Shown: in pieces, positions 16,058-23,670 of the stretch
Numbering within the stretch: position 1 is the stretch's first letter
Layout of the letters: every line of letters starts with the position of its first letter
Origin: Zygnema circumcarinatum SAG 698-1b
Lineage: Eukaryota > Plantae > Zygnematophyceae
Length of the DNA stretch: 64,000 bases
Assembly: GCA_037447605.1 (NCBI GenBank)
Contig: CM074811.1
Coordinates: forward strand, 2,790,001-2,854,000
Reading direction: 5' to 3'
The notes under the pieces: generated by a model
The model's input: only the letters and a program-made list of their open reading frames with translations
The model's database searches: none
What the model was told of the DNA's origin: nothing
Program-made: the position numbers and the translations under genes

Positions 16058-16853
16058 TTCCGCTTCTTTGATTGTCCCGGAGAAAGGTCATGTGAGGATT
16101 CCTGGGTGGGTGGAAAGGTGATGTTTGACGATTGTCTTGCTGGCGGTTGATGGTTTGTTGCTTTTTCGGAAAGCACTGCGGCTCAGAGTACAATACTGAT
16201 TGGTTCGTGTTTCGTTTATGGGTTCCGTGGCCCGTTCTGGTATCGCTTTTGTCTGGGATCAGTTCATGTTTAAGCTGTTGCTGAAAAACTGCTTTGATTG
16301 TTGATGTTTATGGACCAGTTCTTTCTCTCTCTCTCCCTCTCGCTCTGTCTCTCTCTCTCTAACTCAGCAGTTGTGGGGGATGTCCTTGCCAGGGGGTTGT
16401 CTGCAGAAGTTAGCGGAGGTATTGATAGCCATAAGGGATGAAAGAGCATGTCAGGATGTTGCAAGGCAGACGCTTGCTCTGTGCCCGGCACACCCACGTG
16501 CAGCACAAATCAAGTCCACCATTGATTTACATTTGACATGTGGTGCATCAGATGAACATAGTACGAGAGAGCAACCGAATGAGTACGGTTCCTTAACTTC
16601 AAAAGTGAAGGGGAGGGATAATGCATCTCATTCAGATAGGAAGTTGAAGATGCATGTTGGTAAGAACGAAAGAGGGATAAGAAATGGAGAGGAAAAATCT
16701 GCTAATGCTTCAGTCAGAGCTGGACAGCAGAGCAATAATGAACGCAGCATTGGCGATGTAGGAGGAGACAGGGTTGAGCATAGAAACGAGTACAGGGAAA
16801 CCGTGGTCAAGGTGAGGCAGCCGACGCTGACACATAGAGGTTTGGATGGTTAG
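16058..16853 (+). pseudogene. Partial duplicate of CABIN1 (3' part of intron 5 plus first 456 nt of exon 6), truncated by TAG
   Basis: 16058-16848 matches 28269-29078. The exon part 16393-16848 differs from 28623-29078 at about 11 positions by hand count. Homology ends abruptly at tttggatg, followed by an in-frame TAG (16851-16853). No upstream CABIN1 exons are copied. Confidence 0.9.
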
Positions 16854-17873
16854 CGTGGTTGGTCGCTGGCTTAGTCGACCAACGCTGGTGACGTGACATG
16901 ACGTGACATGACGTGACTTGACTGACTCTCCCTTTCTCGCATTCTGCTCCGAACAGATCGACCCGCCGGGCTGCAGACCAAAATGAAGATGACAATGTTC
17001 CGACTTCTGACCAAACACAGCTCACAACATCTCTTGGCATCATTTTCAACTCATCACATATCCTCGATAGAGGCGATCATGGTCTGCTACCCAACCAAAG
17101 AGAGCGATCGACTGTTTGCATAACACCGCAATGCCAACAAGAACCGAAAGCCGAAGACGAACTATCCATCCATCCCCAAAGCGTGTCTTTATGCATCCCT
17201 TGTGCATGCCACTGCCATGGTGCGTCCGCTCCCTCATCTGCCGTGCCTGTGCAGGTACGCGCACTACTGGAAAGCCATGATAAGTTTGACCGCCTCGTCC
17301 TCTGAGAGTGCAAAGGAGGGAGGAGAGGCGTCACGCGCCCCATGAGCCGCTCTCGCATGCGACAAAAGTCGCATGCCTATTCGCACTCGCTAAGGCCGCG
17401 GTCAGTCGGGTGTTGTGTCGTCGCGCAGACCCCGATCCATCGCTTCAAGGCATGCCTGCACGCAGAGGAAACCGTCAGGACCAGGCCGGTGAAGGAAGGT
17501 GAATCTTGAAAGAGTGGGGGAAAACAACTGGAGGAGCATGAAAAGAATCCGTATTTGAATGCAACGAATGGCCTACGTAGGAATTTGATGCAATAAGATA
17601 ACTCTTAGTGTCTTGTGAAGAGGATCATAACGGATCTCTCGTAAGAAAAAAACTAACTTCCATCAGATAGCCTCATGATAACAAAGCAAGTAGTTCAAGT
17701 TGAACGATTGTGCAGAGTCGAATCCAAACATTCCAAAATGATCAGAAGAAAGACAGGAAATAGACTGCAACAGTAAGCAGCAGCAGCCATAGGAGGTGTC
17801 AAGGGACAAGGCGAAGAGTACCAGCATCGGTAACGGGAGGAGGGGCTCAAGGAGAACGGCTCGGAGGGGGACG

Positions 17874-20800
17874 TCAAGGAGGGGGTCGACGGCTGGGAGG
17901 AGGCTTACGTGGAGGGGGACTTTTCGAAGGGGGCCGAGGACGGGGAGGAGGGGATCGTGAAGCTGCAAGAATGCAGGGCATTGTGTGAGTTCCCGTTCAT
18001 AATTAAAAGTGAACTCATGTCTTCCATAGCTAACATATTCTAATCAAAACACGTCCTTATAAACGTTCTGGGAGGATGCAGAACGAAATGAAAACCCATT
18101 CAAACCGCATTCAGTGTGCTCTAACAGCAACGACAGTGTAAAGTCGATAGTTTCCACAGCTTATGCCACACTTTACTTTTCCTTTCCTGCGAGAATCTAA
18201 AAGCAGCAGGTTGCAACTCACCACACGTGCCCGACGTCAGTGCATATCCCTTGTCGCATGTACACGTGGCCGTGTCGTACCCGCACGTGCCGCGGCCCCC
18301 GCACGCTCCCTCGGGAGACCCGCTCTGGCAGAAGGCCGCGCACTTTTGCGGAGATTTCTGCTTCTTAGGGGTTTTAGGGGCGCCACATCCTGTGATATTA
18401 CGAAAAATGCAGTTGCTGTTGAGATTGAGTGGGCAATACGATTTCCCAGACGCTGTAAGTTTGATTGGCCCGGAGAAGTAGTTGTATTGGATCTCCAGGT
18501 CCACTTCGTTATCGGTCGCAAGAGTTATGGAGCCAGTCAACTTGTTGTTGTTTAACTGCCTGTTGACATCAACGGTGGCGCGTTAGAGAGAGTGGGAGGA
18601 GGCTTCCCTAAGATCTAAAACCTTAAAACCTAAGCCCTTACCCTAATCCGTAAAATCGAAACACTACATTCTGGAAAATGACGTCCAATCTCTCGCATGC
18701 ATGACTGAGCATTATTTTGCGTCAAAAAAACCAGCACCGTGACAGAAGTGAACAAAGCGAAACCACGATTGATAAAACCATGAGATAATTTCTCATGCAA
18801 ACGCGAAATTAATGTAATAGTGTGCGAGGTAAAAGTGCTTTTCGCCAAGAACCAAAAAAATTCAAACTGCAAATACAACGTTATCATTGCAGCGGTGCTT
18901 ACAGGTACTCCAGTCGGGTGAGTTTAGAGATGAAGCCGGACACTCTCCCCTCCAGTTTGTTATTGCCCAGGTACCTACAGACATAGATAACGACAAAAAA
19001 CTCAACGAGAAGGATTAGGTTGGTTTTGATCTGAACAAAATTTCGAACCAAATAAGCCATGCAACTCCACGTTTAAAGTCCGTGGAAACATGCGGCCTTT
19101 AGCATGCATGCGTAAGGCCGCATGTGGGCATGCACGCACGCATGCATGCATGCGCGACCTATGGCGGATAAACTAGCATTCACTATCACTGGCATTCCTC
19201 TGTCTGGAATTTCTATCGCTTTCATGTCAGATTTATTGAGAAAAATGATGAAAAAACAATGATGTCAGCTTCACAAGGTTGCCGATAGAATCCGGGATAG
19301 ACCCCATCAGGGAATTACCAGATAAGCGTCTGCCAAAAATAAAAAAAAAAGGCACTGAATAAACATGCTTCCGCGACTGGCATTTCTGTCACTGGCATTC
19401 CCCTGTCTGGAATTTCTATCACTATCATTTCAGATTTGAAAGGAAAAATACTTACAATGTTTGCAGATTCGCAAAGTTGCCGATAGCATCCGGGATCGAC
19501 CCAGTTAAGGAATTATTAGACAAGTCTCTGCCAGAAAATAGAAAGAAAGGCATCACGAATCTGGCCCATGTTTGCAGCAAAAGCAATAGTGATATGGGAA
19601 GAATGCTCAAGTGAATGCGGCGGATTTTTAGGTTTTCAGATTTATGGGGAAAAATACTTACAAGTAGAACAGATTCGCAAGGCTGCCGATAGTATGCGGA
19701 ATGGACCCCGAGAGAAAATTACCAGAGCAGCTTCTGCCAAAATTAAAAAAAATAGGAACTGAATAAACATGCTGCCATGACTAGCATTTTTGTCACAGGG
19801 CTTCCTCTGTCTGAAATTACTATCACTTTCATTCCAGATTTATGGGGAAAAATACTTACAATGCGAACAGAGTCGAAACGTTGCCGATAGAATCGGGGAT
19901 AGACCCCGTTAGTGAATTAGAATCCAAATACCTGCCACAAATATACAAAGACACTGAATAAAGTTGCTGCCGCGACTGCCATTTCTATCACTAGCATTCC
20001 TCAGTCTGGCATATCTATCAATTCCATTTCAAATTTAAGTGGGAAAACACTTACAAGTAGTTCAGATTTGCAAGGTTGCCGATAGAATCCGGGATAGACC
20101 CCGTCAGGGAATTATTAACCAAGTCTCTGCAAAAAAATACAAGAAAGGCATCACGAATCTGGCCCATGTTTGCAACAAAAGTGAAAGTGACGTGGGAAAA
20201 ATGGTCAAGTGAATGCGGCGGATTTTTAGGTTTTCAGATTTATAGGGCAAAATACTTACAATGCTTGCAGATTCGCAAGGTTGCCGATAGCATGCGGGAT
20301 AGATCCCAAGAGGAAATTACCAGAGCAGCTTCTGCCAAAATTAAAAAAAATAGGAACTGAATAAACATGCTGCCATGACTAACATTTCTGTCACAGGCAT
20401 TCCTGTCTGAAATTTCGATCACTTTCATACCAGATTTATGGGGGAAAATAATTACAATATGGACAGAGTCGAAAGGTTGCCGATAGAATCGGGGATAGAC
20501 CCCGTTAGTGAATTATCCACAAAGTATCTGCCAAAAAACAAAAAGAAAGGGCACTGAATAAACATGCTGCCACGACTAGCATTTCTATAACTGACATTCA
20601 TCTGTCTGACAATTTTATCCTTTAATTTCAGATTTCTGCGAAAAAATACTTACATTTCTTTCAGATTCGCAAGGTTGCCGATAGAATGCGGGATAGACCC
20701 CGAGAGGGGGTTATGACTCAAGTATCTGCCAAAAAAAAAAAAAGTGACATTGATTAAACATGCTGCTCCGACTAACATTTCTATCACTGACATTCCTCTG

Positions 20801-22256
20801 TCGGCCATTTCTATACCTTTCATTTCAGATTTATTGAGGAAAAAACTTACATGTATTGCATATTCAAAAGCTTGACGATAGAATCCGGGATAGACCCCGT
20901 TAGGGCATTATCCACCAAGTCTCTGCCCAAAAATAAAAAAAAAGGGCACTGAATAAACATCCTGCCAAGAATACCATTCCTAACATTGGCATTCCTCTGT
21001 CTGGCATTTCATATCACTTTCATTTCAGATTTAAGGGGAAAAATACTTACAATTCTTGCAGATTAGCAAGGTTGCCGATAGAATCGGGGATAGACCCCGT
21101 CAGGGAATTGCCATACAAGTTTCTGCAAAAAAAAAAAAAAATTAGGCACTGCATAAACATGCTGTCCTGACTAGCATTTCTATCACTGGCATTCCTGTCT
21201 GGAATTTCTAATCACTTCACTTCAGATTTACGGGTAAACATACTTACAATGATTGCAGATTCGCAAGGCCGCCGATAGAATCCGGGATAGACCCAGCGAG
21301 GGAATTATCACCCAAGTCTCTGCCAAAAAATAGACAAGAAAGGTATCACAAATCTGGCCCATGTTTGCACCAAAAGCAAAAGTGACGTGGAAAGAATGCT
21401 CAAGTGAATGCGGCGAATTCGAGCAGCGACAACACGTCCATGCGCGTGACGTGACACGTGACCAGGACGCGAGCACACACGCACTGGCAGCTCCGCTTCT
21501 CCGGAAGTTGCAGTGCTTCAGTGCTTCTACAAATTTTGCATGTCCCAACATCTGAGCCCTCCCTACCACAGTGTACACACAAACATGCATCGAAAGCATC
21601 ATTATGGAACTTTATGGAAGAGAACCCCTTACAAGGATGTCAGCTTTGCCAGGTTGCCGATGGCAGGTGAAATGCTTCCTCCTACGTTGCGGGCCCTTAA
21701 AAATCTGCATAAGGCAGGTTAGCAGCGAGAGCGTTAGAAGAAGAAAGGTCCGCGGGAAGTAGGACTGCTCCGGGCAGCCCTTTTCAGTCCCGTTCCGTGG
21801 GGTCATCTTCCCGTAGACCCTCCTCGTAGCTTCGGGCTGCAGTTCAGGAATCACAAGCGGTGTTCAGTCAAAGTGTAGCTCACAGCTCAATAACGCGCCC
21901 GCTTGCGTCGCATCTGATGTCACTCCATTTGCTGCAGAGGCGGTTACTCGACTTCCAGGAGGTGAGCTGCTGTCCGTTGTTGAATGCCGCTTTGACAGCG
22001 AGAAGAGTGTTCCCTGCGCCCAAGCGCGAGCAGATGCAGGATTGGATTGAGGCCGCGGTCCGCTTCAAAAAGCACAAACAGAGGCCCCGCCGCGGGCAGG
22101 CCGCCTCTCCCCTTCTTCCATAGAGGGCGGGCGGGCGGGCCGCGGCGGCTCACTGTCTCGCGGGTCGATGGCCTGAGCGGCGGCTTCGCGCGGGGCGGCG
22201 GCGGCGGCAAAGAGGAGGAGCGCCGCCGCGAGAGAGAGAGACCGCGCGCGCGCCAT
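17874..22256 (-). CDS. Secreted leucine-rich-repeat protein (signal peptide, LRRNT, ~14-15 plant-type LRRs, Cys-rich EGF-like module, Pro-rich tail); 17 exons, ~531 aa
   Basis: All exons are phase-compatible. E1 22154-22256 MARARSLSLAAALLLFAAAAAPREAAAQAIDPRD. E2 21884-22013 (R)NTLLAVKAAFNNGQQLTSWKSSNRLCSKWSDIRCDASGRVIEL. 72-nt LRR exons: E3 21633-21704, E4 21248-21319, E5 21051-21122, E6 20851-20922, E7 20654-20725, E8 20456-20527, E9 20260-20331, E10 20055-20126, E11 19860-19931, E12 19662-19733, E13 19456-19527, E14 19258-19329, E15 18903-18974. E16 18222-18559 QLNNNKLTGSI...QYNYFSGPI...CAAFCQSGSPEGACGGRGTCGYDTATCTCDKGYALTSGTC. E17 17874-17962 SRSPPPRPRPPSKSPPPRKPPPSRRPPP-TGA. All splice sites are AG/GT. 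Total 1596 nt. Confidence 0.9.
18617..18646. repeat. Short degenerate telomere-like (CCCTAA/CCTAAAA) tract in intron 15 of the LRR gene
   Basis: aaaaccttaaaacctaagcccttaccctaa. Confidence 0.35.
19170..21415 (-). repeat. Tandem array of 11 ~200-bp units, each one intron (~123-134 nt) plus one 72-nt LRR exon
   Basis: The motif gttgccgatagaatccgggatagacccc (reverse complement encodes GSIPDSIGN) recurs about every 196-206 nt from ~19280 to ~21270. It is flanked each time by cttac (donor GTAAG on the - strand, with two exceptions) and ctgc plus an A-run (acceptor plus polypyrimidine tract on the - strand). Confidence 0.95.
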
Positions 22257-23434: not shown

Positions 23435-23612
23435 TAAAGGTCTCTCTCTCCTCTACTCTTTATCCTCTGGTCTCTCACTCTCTCTCCTCTACTCTCACTC
23501 TATTACTCTCTTTCTCTTTCTCCTTTACTCTCTCTACTCTCTCTCCTTTACTCTCACTTTGCTCTCTCCTCTGCTCTCCTTTAGTCTTCTCTCCTTTGCT
23601 TTCACTCTACTC

Positions 23613-23653
<41 letters not shown>

Positions 23654-23670
23654 TGCTTTGCTCTCTTTTT
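23435..23670. repeat. CT-rich low-complexity tract with (CT)n microsatellite (~23606-23650)
   Basis: Directly visible pyrimidine-rich run. Confidence 0.9.

Follow-up and report, generated by a model that had tools for sequence, protein, structure and literature searches.

Within a stretch of 64,000 nucleotides (nt) of contig CM074811.1 from Zygnema circumcarinatum SAG 698-1b (GenBank assembly GCA_037447605.1, positions 2,790,001 to 2,854,000; hereafter 'the window'), a tandem repeat on the minus strand may fairly be described as a satellite that hides a gene. Judging from the sequence, the locus is likely a nuclear gene of a zygnematophycean-type streptophyte green alga for a secreted leucine-rich repeat (LRR) protein, and this plant-type LRR gene is probably live. 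It would be a clean, datable case of a plant-type LRR surface that was lengthened by tandem copies of whole exon+intron units and diversified at five codons per repeat, in an alga belonging to the group closest to land plants. The locus reveals no new mechanism; this is a known mode of receptor evolution.

Exons were sought by a regular-expression and translation scan of the minus strand from 22700 to 17500 for AG, 72 nt, and GT with a pyrimidine-rich tract upstream. The scan yields exactly 13 exons, each without a stop codon when read from nt 2 and each in phase 2 at both ends. Rebuilt by script together with the exons that flank them, they form a 17-exon model on the minus strand (22256–17874) with a single 531-codon reading frame, open throughout and ending at 17874. 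Exon 1 (22154–22256; ATG at 22256; donor GTGAGC) encodes a signal-peptide-like N-terminus, and exon 2 (21884–22013; 130 nt) encodes an LRR N-terminal cap with a cysteine pair (Pfam LRRNT_2, PF08263). Exon 3 (E3; 21633–21704) and exon 15 (E15; 18903–18974) are old, unique LRR exons of 72 nt in phase 2-2. Between them lies a young tandem array (19258–21319) of 11 exons of 72 nt, with introns of 123–134 nt and one plant-type LRR per exon: E4–E7 (21319–21248, 21122–21051, 20922–20851, and 20725–20654), E8–E11 (20527–20456, 20331–20260, 20126–20055, and 19931–19860), and E12–E14 (19733–19662, 19527–19456, and 19329–19258). Exon 16 (18222–18559; 338 nt) specifies the last LRR turns, followed by a Cys-rich C-terminal cap and an EGF-like module, and the coding part of exon 17 (17874–17962) adds a 28-codon tail that is rich in Pro, Arg, and Ser, contains S-P-P-P motifs, and ends in a TGA at 17876–17874. 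All introns are of the GT-AG type with pyrimidine tracts (positions 21116–21153 cover intron 4's poly-T tract and run 7 nt into exon 5), and every acceptor is (Y)n-CAG or TAG. Donors are GTAAG- or GTAAT-like in 12 of the 13 cassettes and intact at 15 of 16 positions across the gene, the exception being that of exon 14.

A preliminary description of this DNA had proposed the same 17-exon, 531-residue model with its end at 17874. Its 13 exons with their borders, phase, and open frames were all recovered and the peptides quoted for them reproduced, as were the in-frame flanking exons, namely those for the signal-peptide-like N-terminus and LRRNT_2 before the array and that for the conserved C-terminal cap after it. 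It had also held that the gene is hidden from the open reading frame (ORF) track; indeed, the six-frame ORF list shows nothing useful across the array region.

The copies in the array are not independent, and 13 open exons alone are little proof of coding; the pattern of divergence was used instead. The 11 array exons differ from one another at 16–37% of nucleotides yet are all stop-free, for which a neutral simulation at that divergence gives P = 0.03–0.08. Insertions and deletions (indels) number 0 in 792 nt of array exon versus nine events in 999 nt of eight alignable introns (P(0) = 8e-4). Because the diverged copies keep a stop-free frame, carry no indels, and vary in a non-uniform manner, we judge the array exons to be coding sequence under selection.

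This variation follows the geometry of the repeat. In the register LxxLxxLxLxxNxLxGxIPxxLxx, it is residue 7 (Leu or Ile) whose codon the intron interrupts. With the break in this first Leu codon of LxLxxN, the codons for any one beta-strand face are divided between two consecutive exons, the end of the former and the beginning of the latter. Five codons per repeat are hypervariable (HV): x5 and x6 close an exon, and x8, x10, and x11 come soon after the next one opens. None of the 11 array exons deviates at the framework Asn, Gly, Ser-Ile-Pro, or Ile. Solved structures of plant LRR proteins show x5, x6, x8, x10, and x11 to be the solvent-exposed residues of the concave beta-sheet. At codon positions 1 and 2, nucleotide diversity (pi) is 0.59–0.65 in the HV codons and 0.13–0.15 in the framework codons, compared to 0.21 in intron cores and 0.24–0.25 at third codon positions (ranges span the eight units with type-A introns, defined below, to all 11 array exons). 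HV variation is thus about three times that of introns (Mann-Whitney p = 2e-5 to 5e-7), and third codon positions are indistinguishable from introns. Nei-Gojobori sums give dN of 1.14 at HV codons and 0.17 in the framework, with dS of 0.32 overall and a Jukes-Cantor (JC) intron distance of 0.23. Because HV variation exceeds two neutral yardsticks, the introns and the third positions, the pattern points to diversifying selection on the concave ligand-binding face and not to mere relaxation. Diversification at this locus appears to be of the ordinary evolutionary kind, with positive selection on the ligand face.

We propose the following history. E4–E14 would be a lineage-specific expansion via unequal crossing-over of whole exon+intron units, with the copying of a two-unit block as the last event in the array. 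After duplication, the five exposed beta-strand codons would have diverged about three times as fast as introns and third positions, with the framework held under constraint. The protein would be exported, perhaps held in the wall via its Pro-rich tail, and would, like secreted LRR proteins of the PGIP or LRX type, bind a partner that changes quickly (microbial or related to mating). Its diversity would arise over evolutionary time in the germ line and not via programmed rearrangement or regulated exon choice.

Growth by whole exon+intron duplication, as the preliminary description had it, agrees with both the identities among units and their tree. At the nucleotide level, the exons E4–E14 are 62–84% identical to one another, and E3 and E15 are only 33–54% identical to them (44–54% in the case of E3). 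The array of 13 cassettes claimed earlier therefore has to be narrowed: E4–E14 do form one repeat family, but E3 and E15 are old, unique exons. The introns (I) fall into two types. Type A (I4–I8, I10, I11, and I13) comprises introns of 123–128 nt that are 73–91% identical (mean p-distance 0.197; JC 0.23). Type B comprises I9 and I12, which are 89% identical to each other and resemble type A only over their first 28 nt; I3 (313 nt) also ends in 100 nt of type B (88–90%). I14 has a 5' half of type A (80–87% identical), a destroyed donor, and a foreign 3' half, and I15 is unrelated to either type. The foreign half of I14 contains a GCATGC-rich near-palindrome (19088–19170) with an inverted 38-nt match at 89%, which marks where the duplicated array ends on its 3' side.

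The youngest duplication (19528–20527, minus strand) relates E8-I8-E9-I9 (20527–20127) to E11-I11-E12-I12 (19931–19528). These two-unit block copies are 88.5% identical over 401 nt, that is, 11.5% diverged, and in a maximum-likelihood tree of units (U), the pairs U8/U11 and U9/U12 each have 100% support, with the remainder unresolved. Exons 9 (20260–20331) and 12 (19662–19733), which both lie in this youngest block copy, carry an S-C-S-G-N-F strand where x-L-x-x-N-S is the rule, with Cys at a core Leu position. Two qualifiers of the earlier account went too far: introns called 'near-identical' have a mean divergence of about 20% in type A, and growth called 'ongoing' had its youngest copy event long enough ago for the 11.5% divergence to accumulate. 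By these measures, the array copies are old.

Elsewhere in the 64-kb window, neither paralogous arrays nor copies of the intron family were found, and a tblastn search with the model gave no extra LRR pieces. Alignment of both strands of the introns to the exons, judged against shuffles, revealed no relic or antisense LRR exons; only the plus strand of I13 scores slightly above its shuffle null (25, against at most 23 for the shuffles), and translation of I13 and I12 gave no frame resembling an LRR.

In order, the predicted product comprises a signal-peptide-like start, an LRRNT_2 cap, roughly 15 LRRs of the 24-residue plant type, a Cys-rich cap/EGF-like part, and a short Pro-rich tail. Exon 1 encodes a basic start, a 16-residue Ala/Leu core, and A-Q-A before a polar mature end (KD19 1.59). 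We infer that this is a signal peptide, likely cut after AQA; it is the sole hydrophobic window of the 531-residue model, with none above KD19 1.6 elsewhere. Exon 2 matches Pfam LRRNT_2 (PF08263) with E = 1.4e-6 and 28.9 bits, over a cut-off of 20.7. For the repeats themselves, the profile and the alignment were built from 12 exon peptides, E5 being left out. Their consensus, xLxxNSLxGSIPDSIGNLANLxx plus the split Leu, fits LxxLxxLxLxxNxLxGxIPxxLxx, and nine of the 12 exons match Pfam LRR_1 singly. The profile matches 54 sequences of the Protein Data Bank (PDB), all of them ectodomains of plant LRR proteins and chiefly those of LRR receptor kinases (GSO1 [4e-41], MIK2, FLS2, ERL1/2, BRI1/BRL2, HSL1, and SERK1/2). 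Matches beyond the kinases are TMM, PGIP (E = 1.6e-7), LRX2 (1.8e-4), and an LRR antifreeze protein. Over most of its length, the spliced model aligns with annotated Closterium proteins: residues 38–498 with residues 80–566 of one (P0019; E = 2e-65) and residues 27–500 with another (P0003; E = 6e-64).

Exon 16 connects the model to a narrower family. A phmmer search of 1.84 billion representatives returned 22 relatives at E <= 1e-3, the best at E = 1.7e-8 and 42% identity. The named ones come from Mesotaenium endlicherianum and three Closterium strains, and the rest are transcript-like Logan contigs. The exon encodes the motif series N-Y-F-x-G, C-P, N-C, Q-R/K-S, C-x-x-F-C, C-G-G-x-G-x-C, C-x-C-x-x-G-Y, and C. 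In an 18-sequence alignment of the module, nine columns are invariant (N26, N49, C50, C73, C77, C86, G88, G90, and C92), five of which are Cys, and Q67, C99, and C101 are conserved at 90% or more; across these sequences, the first motif takes the form N-Y/F-F and the fourth Q-R-S. Pfam EGF models match below threshold only (E = 0.009–0.04). An AlphaFold 2 (AF2) model of exon 16 has a pLDDT of 75; against PDB folds, Foldseek returned nothing for it and a wide VIA-align comparison gave Z <= 3.2, at LRR ends only. We use 'EGF-like' as a description of the Cys pattern and the sub-threshold Pfam matches and not as a claim of membership.

Measured against the established classes, the model has the hallmarks of plant-specific LRR ectodomains (24-residue repeats and an LRRNT_2 domain with its Cys pair) and carries the LRR, Cys-rich cap, and EGF-like motifs of the zygnematophycean family. 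It has neither the transmembrane (TM) helix nor the kinase of LRR receptor-like kinases (RLKs). It also lacks the single TM helix and short cytoplasmic tail of LRR receptor-like proteins (RLPs), as it stops before any TM segment. The relatives vary in the same respect. P0023, of 302 residues on a 1.5-kb transcript-like contig, consists of a signal peptide, cap, LRRs, Cys-rich part, and Pro-rich tail with no membrane anchor; P0001 and P0010 continue through a Pro-rich linker into a TM segment and a kinase. When the kinase halves of these two proteins served as tblastn queries, the 64-kb window yielded no relic of such a kinase (best E = 0.58).

The exon design has a counterpart in Closterium. 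The gene for P0019 spans 7.5 kb and carries its LRRs on 72-nt exons with a Leu codon split in phase 2; at the boundary, the exon ends in C-T, the intron runs from GT to CAG, and the next exon starts with G. Because exon size, phase, and boundary all agree with those of this homologue, the one-LRR, 72-nt exon design is best read as inherited and not invented at the locus. The introns of the P0019 gene are long and have minisatellites of their own. One of these, a 101-bp minisatellite inside an intron of the Closterium sp. Naga37s-1 homologue (L005, 5990–6336; 3.4 copies, 99% matches), repeats an LRR exon's 3' end and donor three times, and partial copies of two other exons lie in neighbouring introns. 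Intron content differs greatly within the family: two relatives with the LRRNT-LRR-cap build, from Closterium sp. NIES-68 and Yama58-4 (L001 and L006), are intronless single-exon genes, whereas a third Closterium relative has one LRR per 72-nt exon.

The zygnematophycean relatives considered here are ME000014S01168 and ME000369S06458 of Mesotaenium, GJP44996.1, CAI5478338.1, and CAI5521716.1 of Closterium, and the transcript-derived P0023, P0024, and P0010. Like the model, they have LRRNT, LRRs, the Cys-rich/EGF-like motif series, and then a Pro-rich stretch, and in the gene for CAI5521716.1 the LRR exons are likewise 72 nt long and in phase 2. Identity to the model is only 30–44%, however, and a TM segment plus kinase is present in several relatives (P0001 and P0010). 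Among the relatives examined, no homogeneous exon+intron array comparable to E4–E14 was seen.

Land-plant genes of the SERK/LRR-RLK II and ERECTA groups resemble the locus in their plant-specific 24-residue LRRs, the LRRNT_2 cap exon, and the placement of LRRs on separate exons. LRR exons in ERECTA and SERK genes are 72 bp long, are in phase 2, and have the same x-L-x-x-N start, for which the literature gave partial support only. In contrast to the locus, which lacks both TM segment and kinase and in which 11 exon+intron units are still recognizable as tandem copies, these land-plant genes encode a TM segment and a kinase and have few LRR exons (SERK) and old, non-repetitive introns. In SERK-type genes, a signal-peptide exon and a cap exon are followed by LRR exons of conserved size (PMC7496461), and in-frame loss of an LRR exon has been documented for MtSERK3 (PMC3061892). 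By the evidence of this locus, the 72-nt, phase-2, one-LRR exon of plant receptor genes would predate land plants or at least be common to Zygnematophyceae.

The closest published parallel lies in brown algae. In Ectocarpus, ROCO genes and 46 other LRR genes have each LRR on a single 72-nucleotide exon, with exon shuffling, inactivated or antisense LRR exons in introns, and positive selection, for which the question of adaptive immunity was raised (Zambounis et al. 2012; PMC3341825). This extends to four brown algae, with alternative transcripts that contain different sets of LRR exons and with selected sites mapped to the concave face (Teng et al. 2024; PMC11378527). The reference of the preliminary description to LRR exon shuffling in Ectocarpus ROCO genes is borne out (PMC3341825). 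Its concept of diversification is not new; it is already published for brown algae, whose authors proposed that shuffling and alternative splicing diversify candidate immune receptors (PMC3341825, PMC11378527).

Compared to the brown-algal type I arrays (Ectocarpus and Saccharina), the locus has the same symmetric 72-nt exons with one LRR each, duplication of exons (with their introns), and a signal of diversifying selection on the concave face. It belongs to a streptophyte and not a stramenopile and would encode a secreted LRRNT_2 protein, unlike their cytosolic LRR-ROC-COR GTPases. The inactivated and antisense LRR exons of brown-algal introns have no equivalent in the introns examined here. 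The exon boundary differs as well: the brown-algal exon, GxxPxxLxxxxxLxxLxLxxNxLx, starts at the G of GxxP and is in frame from nt 3 to 71, whereas the exon at this locus starts inside the Leu of LxLxxN and is in frame from nt 2 to 70. Because the boundaries differ, we regard the 72-nt cassette as having been reached independently in brown algae and streptophytes, and the shared size with a different boundary indicates convergence.

PGIP and LRX proteins share with the model an N-terminal cap, a plant-type LRR solenoid, a Cys-rich C-terminal cap, and the lack of a membrane anchor, and they have a signal peptide where the model has a putative one, and the concave face of PGIP is a classic target of diversifying selection. 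LRX proteins end in a Pro-rich, wall-anchoring tail; the tail predicted here has only 28 residues with two or three S-P-P-P motifs and is not an extensin domain of the long LRX kind with many S-P(3-5) repeats. Genes for PGIP and LRX are not built from one-LRR exons, and the likeness comes without sequence evidence of orthology.

Two places in the gene call for closer reading. The decayed donor of exon 14 (19252–19257, minus strand) is GTTTTT instead of the GTAAGT or GTAATT found in its ten sister units. Splicing may still use this weak site, E14 may be skipped (which keeps the frame and leaves 507 residues), or the message may be truncated. The second place is a possible relic of a longer C-terminus (17700–17873, minus strand), where the frame continues Pro-rich through three more TGAs. 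Past the stop at 17876–17874, the order in this frame is Pro-rich, TGA, Pro-rich, TGA, 15 codons, TGA, and a hydrophobic stretch of 17 residues (KD19 2.14). Each of these three TGA codons stands directly after CCT. A second frame behind the stop combines an S/P-rich segment with a hydrophobic 19-mer (KD19 2.34) and a brief polar tail. At the corresponding place, P0001 and P0010 have their Pro-rich linker, TM segment, and kinase. Assuming instead a 144-nt intron from donor 17908 to acceptor 17764 removes the three TGAs; this was not adopted, as it leaves a tail of only seven residues; no convincing kinase or TM exon was found downstream of the model. We think that a membrane anchor may have been lost here, which would have turned the protein into a secreted form; early pseudogenization, or C-runs that were wrongly assembled, would be other possible causes.

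Several of these points weigh against a live gene for a secreted protein and have to be set beside the evidence for it. The 17-exon model is purely computational. GTTTTT is the only GT of exon 14 before an in-frame TAA that lies 27 nt into intron 14, and the Pro-rich codons, TGAs, and TM-like stretch past the stop would fit a truncated former receptor, early decay, or an assembly error. Among the 1.84 billion representatives, no protein is more than 42% identical to exon 16, because of which the gene seems to be unannotated, or the proteins of its genome absent from the library. Five sequencing runs of the organism are on record, none of them as RNA. Two contain 12% and 22% of the sampled 31-mers, and words wholly within exons make up roughly 30% of the stretch. 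These shares are roughly those of a spliced mRNA contig set (39–51 million letters); they are not proof, as a partial or diverged DNA match looks alike. As to selection, framework dN/dS among repeats is only 0.6, and pi and dN come from few sites in non-independent repeat pairs and were computed without a gene-conversion model. Finally, secretion, tethering to the wall by the Pro-rich tail, and the class of ligand are matters that we infer.

Three other explanations compete with that of a live gene that diversified by ordinary evolution. One is that the array is a non-coding 198-bp satellite in which open frames and AG/GT borders are accidents of repetition. Tandem Repeats Finder does report the array as a 198/397-bp repeat (19183–21332, 69% matches), and a single founder with an open frame would hand its openness to every copy. 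Yet the diverged copies retain length, frame, and splice sites where introns gained their nine indels, variation sits precisely at the solvent-exposed LRR positions, unique flanking exons contribute, in frame with the array, the ATG, LRRNT_2, and a conserved C-terminal module, and the product aligns end to end with real proteins. With the Closterium alignment, the LRRNT_2 match, the PDB profile matches, and the pattern of indels and selection, the satellite explanation is refuted in practice, and we give it next to no weight. A decaying gene or pseudogene, derived from a membrane-anchored LRR receptor-like protein whose anchor was lost by nonsense mutations and whose exon 14 donor is being lost, and no longer expressed or functional, deserves more attention. 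It would account for the donor of E14 with the TAA 27 nt downstream and for the Pro-rich codons, three further in-frame TGAs, and TM-like stretch past the stop; moreover, no run recorded as RNA contains the stretch, and large protein libraries are without a near-identical protein. It has to contend with 17 open exons, array exons free of indels (0 in 792 nt, against nine events in 999 nt of introns), an intact start codon, signal-peptide-like N-terminus, and pair of caps, and 15 of 16 intact donors. Additionally, a natural relative, P0023, likewise lacks a TM segment and finishes with a Pro-rich tail, by which a truncated build can be a functional form, and the word shares of 0.12–0.22 fit spliced RNA. 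On balance, we consider such decay unlikely.

The remaining explanation accepts the gene and holds that it is a working combinatorial system, in which regulated skipping or choice of exons, or frequent gain, loss, and swap of cassettes in the germ line or the soma, yields many receptor variants from one locus, as in Dscam-like splicing and in the proposals for brown-algal ROCO genes. All 13 exons of 72 nt are symmetric, and any skip keeps the frame; the donor of E14 is weak, and its skipping would be in frame. HV residues straddle the junctions, and new exon neighbours would create new beta-strand faces. A land-plant SERK gene is documented to have lost an LRR exon with its frame kept (PMC3061892), and alternative combinations of LRR exons are reported for Ectocarpus (PMC11378527). 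The preservation of frame upon gain, loss, swap, or skipping, on which the earlier proposal of a modular system had leaned, is arithmetic and not evidence. Against rapid turnover stands the age of the copies, with introns about 20% diverged and the youngest block 11.5%. Unlike in Ectocarpus, the introns are without spare, inactivated, or antisense LRR exons, and the 64-kb window has no store of paralogous cassettes. Strong consensus donors and pyrimidine-rich acceptors in 12 of the 13 cassettes favour constitutive splicing, and exon skipping is a minor class of alternative splicing in plants (PMC3061892). We therefore find such a system quite improbable. The specific version in which E14, and perhaps other cassettes, are skipped under regulation so that each new neighbourhood makes a new binding face strikes us as more doubtful still; if it were true, the sister lineage of land plants would have a splice-based repertoire for secreted recognition.

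With a live gene as the preferred reading, one consequence concerns annotation. Genes of this build resemble satellites and contain no long ORF; annotation may mask or overlook them, and counts of LRR receptors in algal genomes may consequently be too low. TC-rich microsatellites flank the gene on either side: about 105 copies of TC/CT-rich units occupy 23441–23654, upstream on the promoter side, and a (TC)20 tract lies downstream at 16320–16360.

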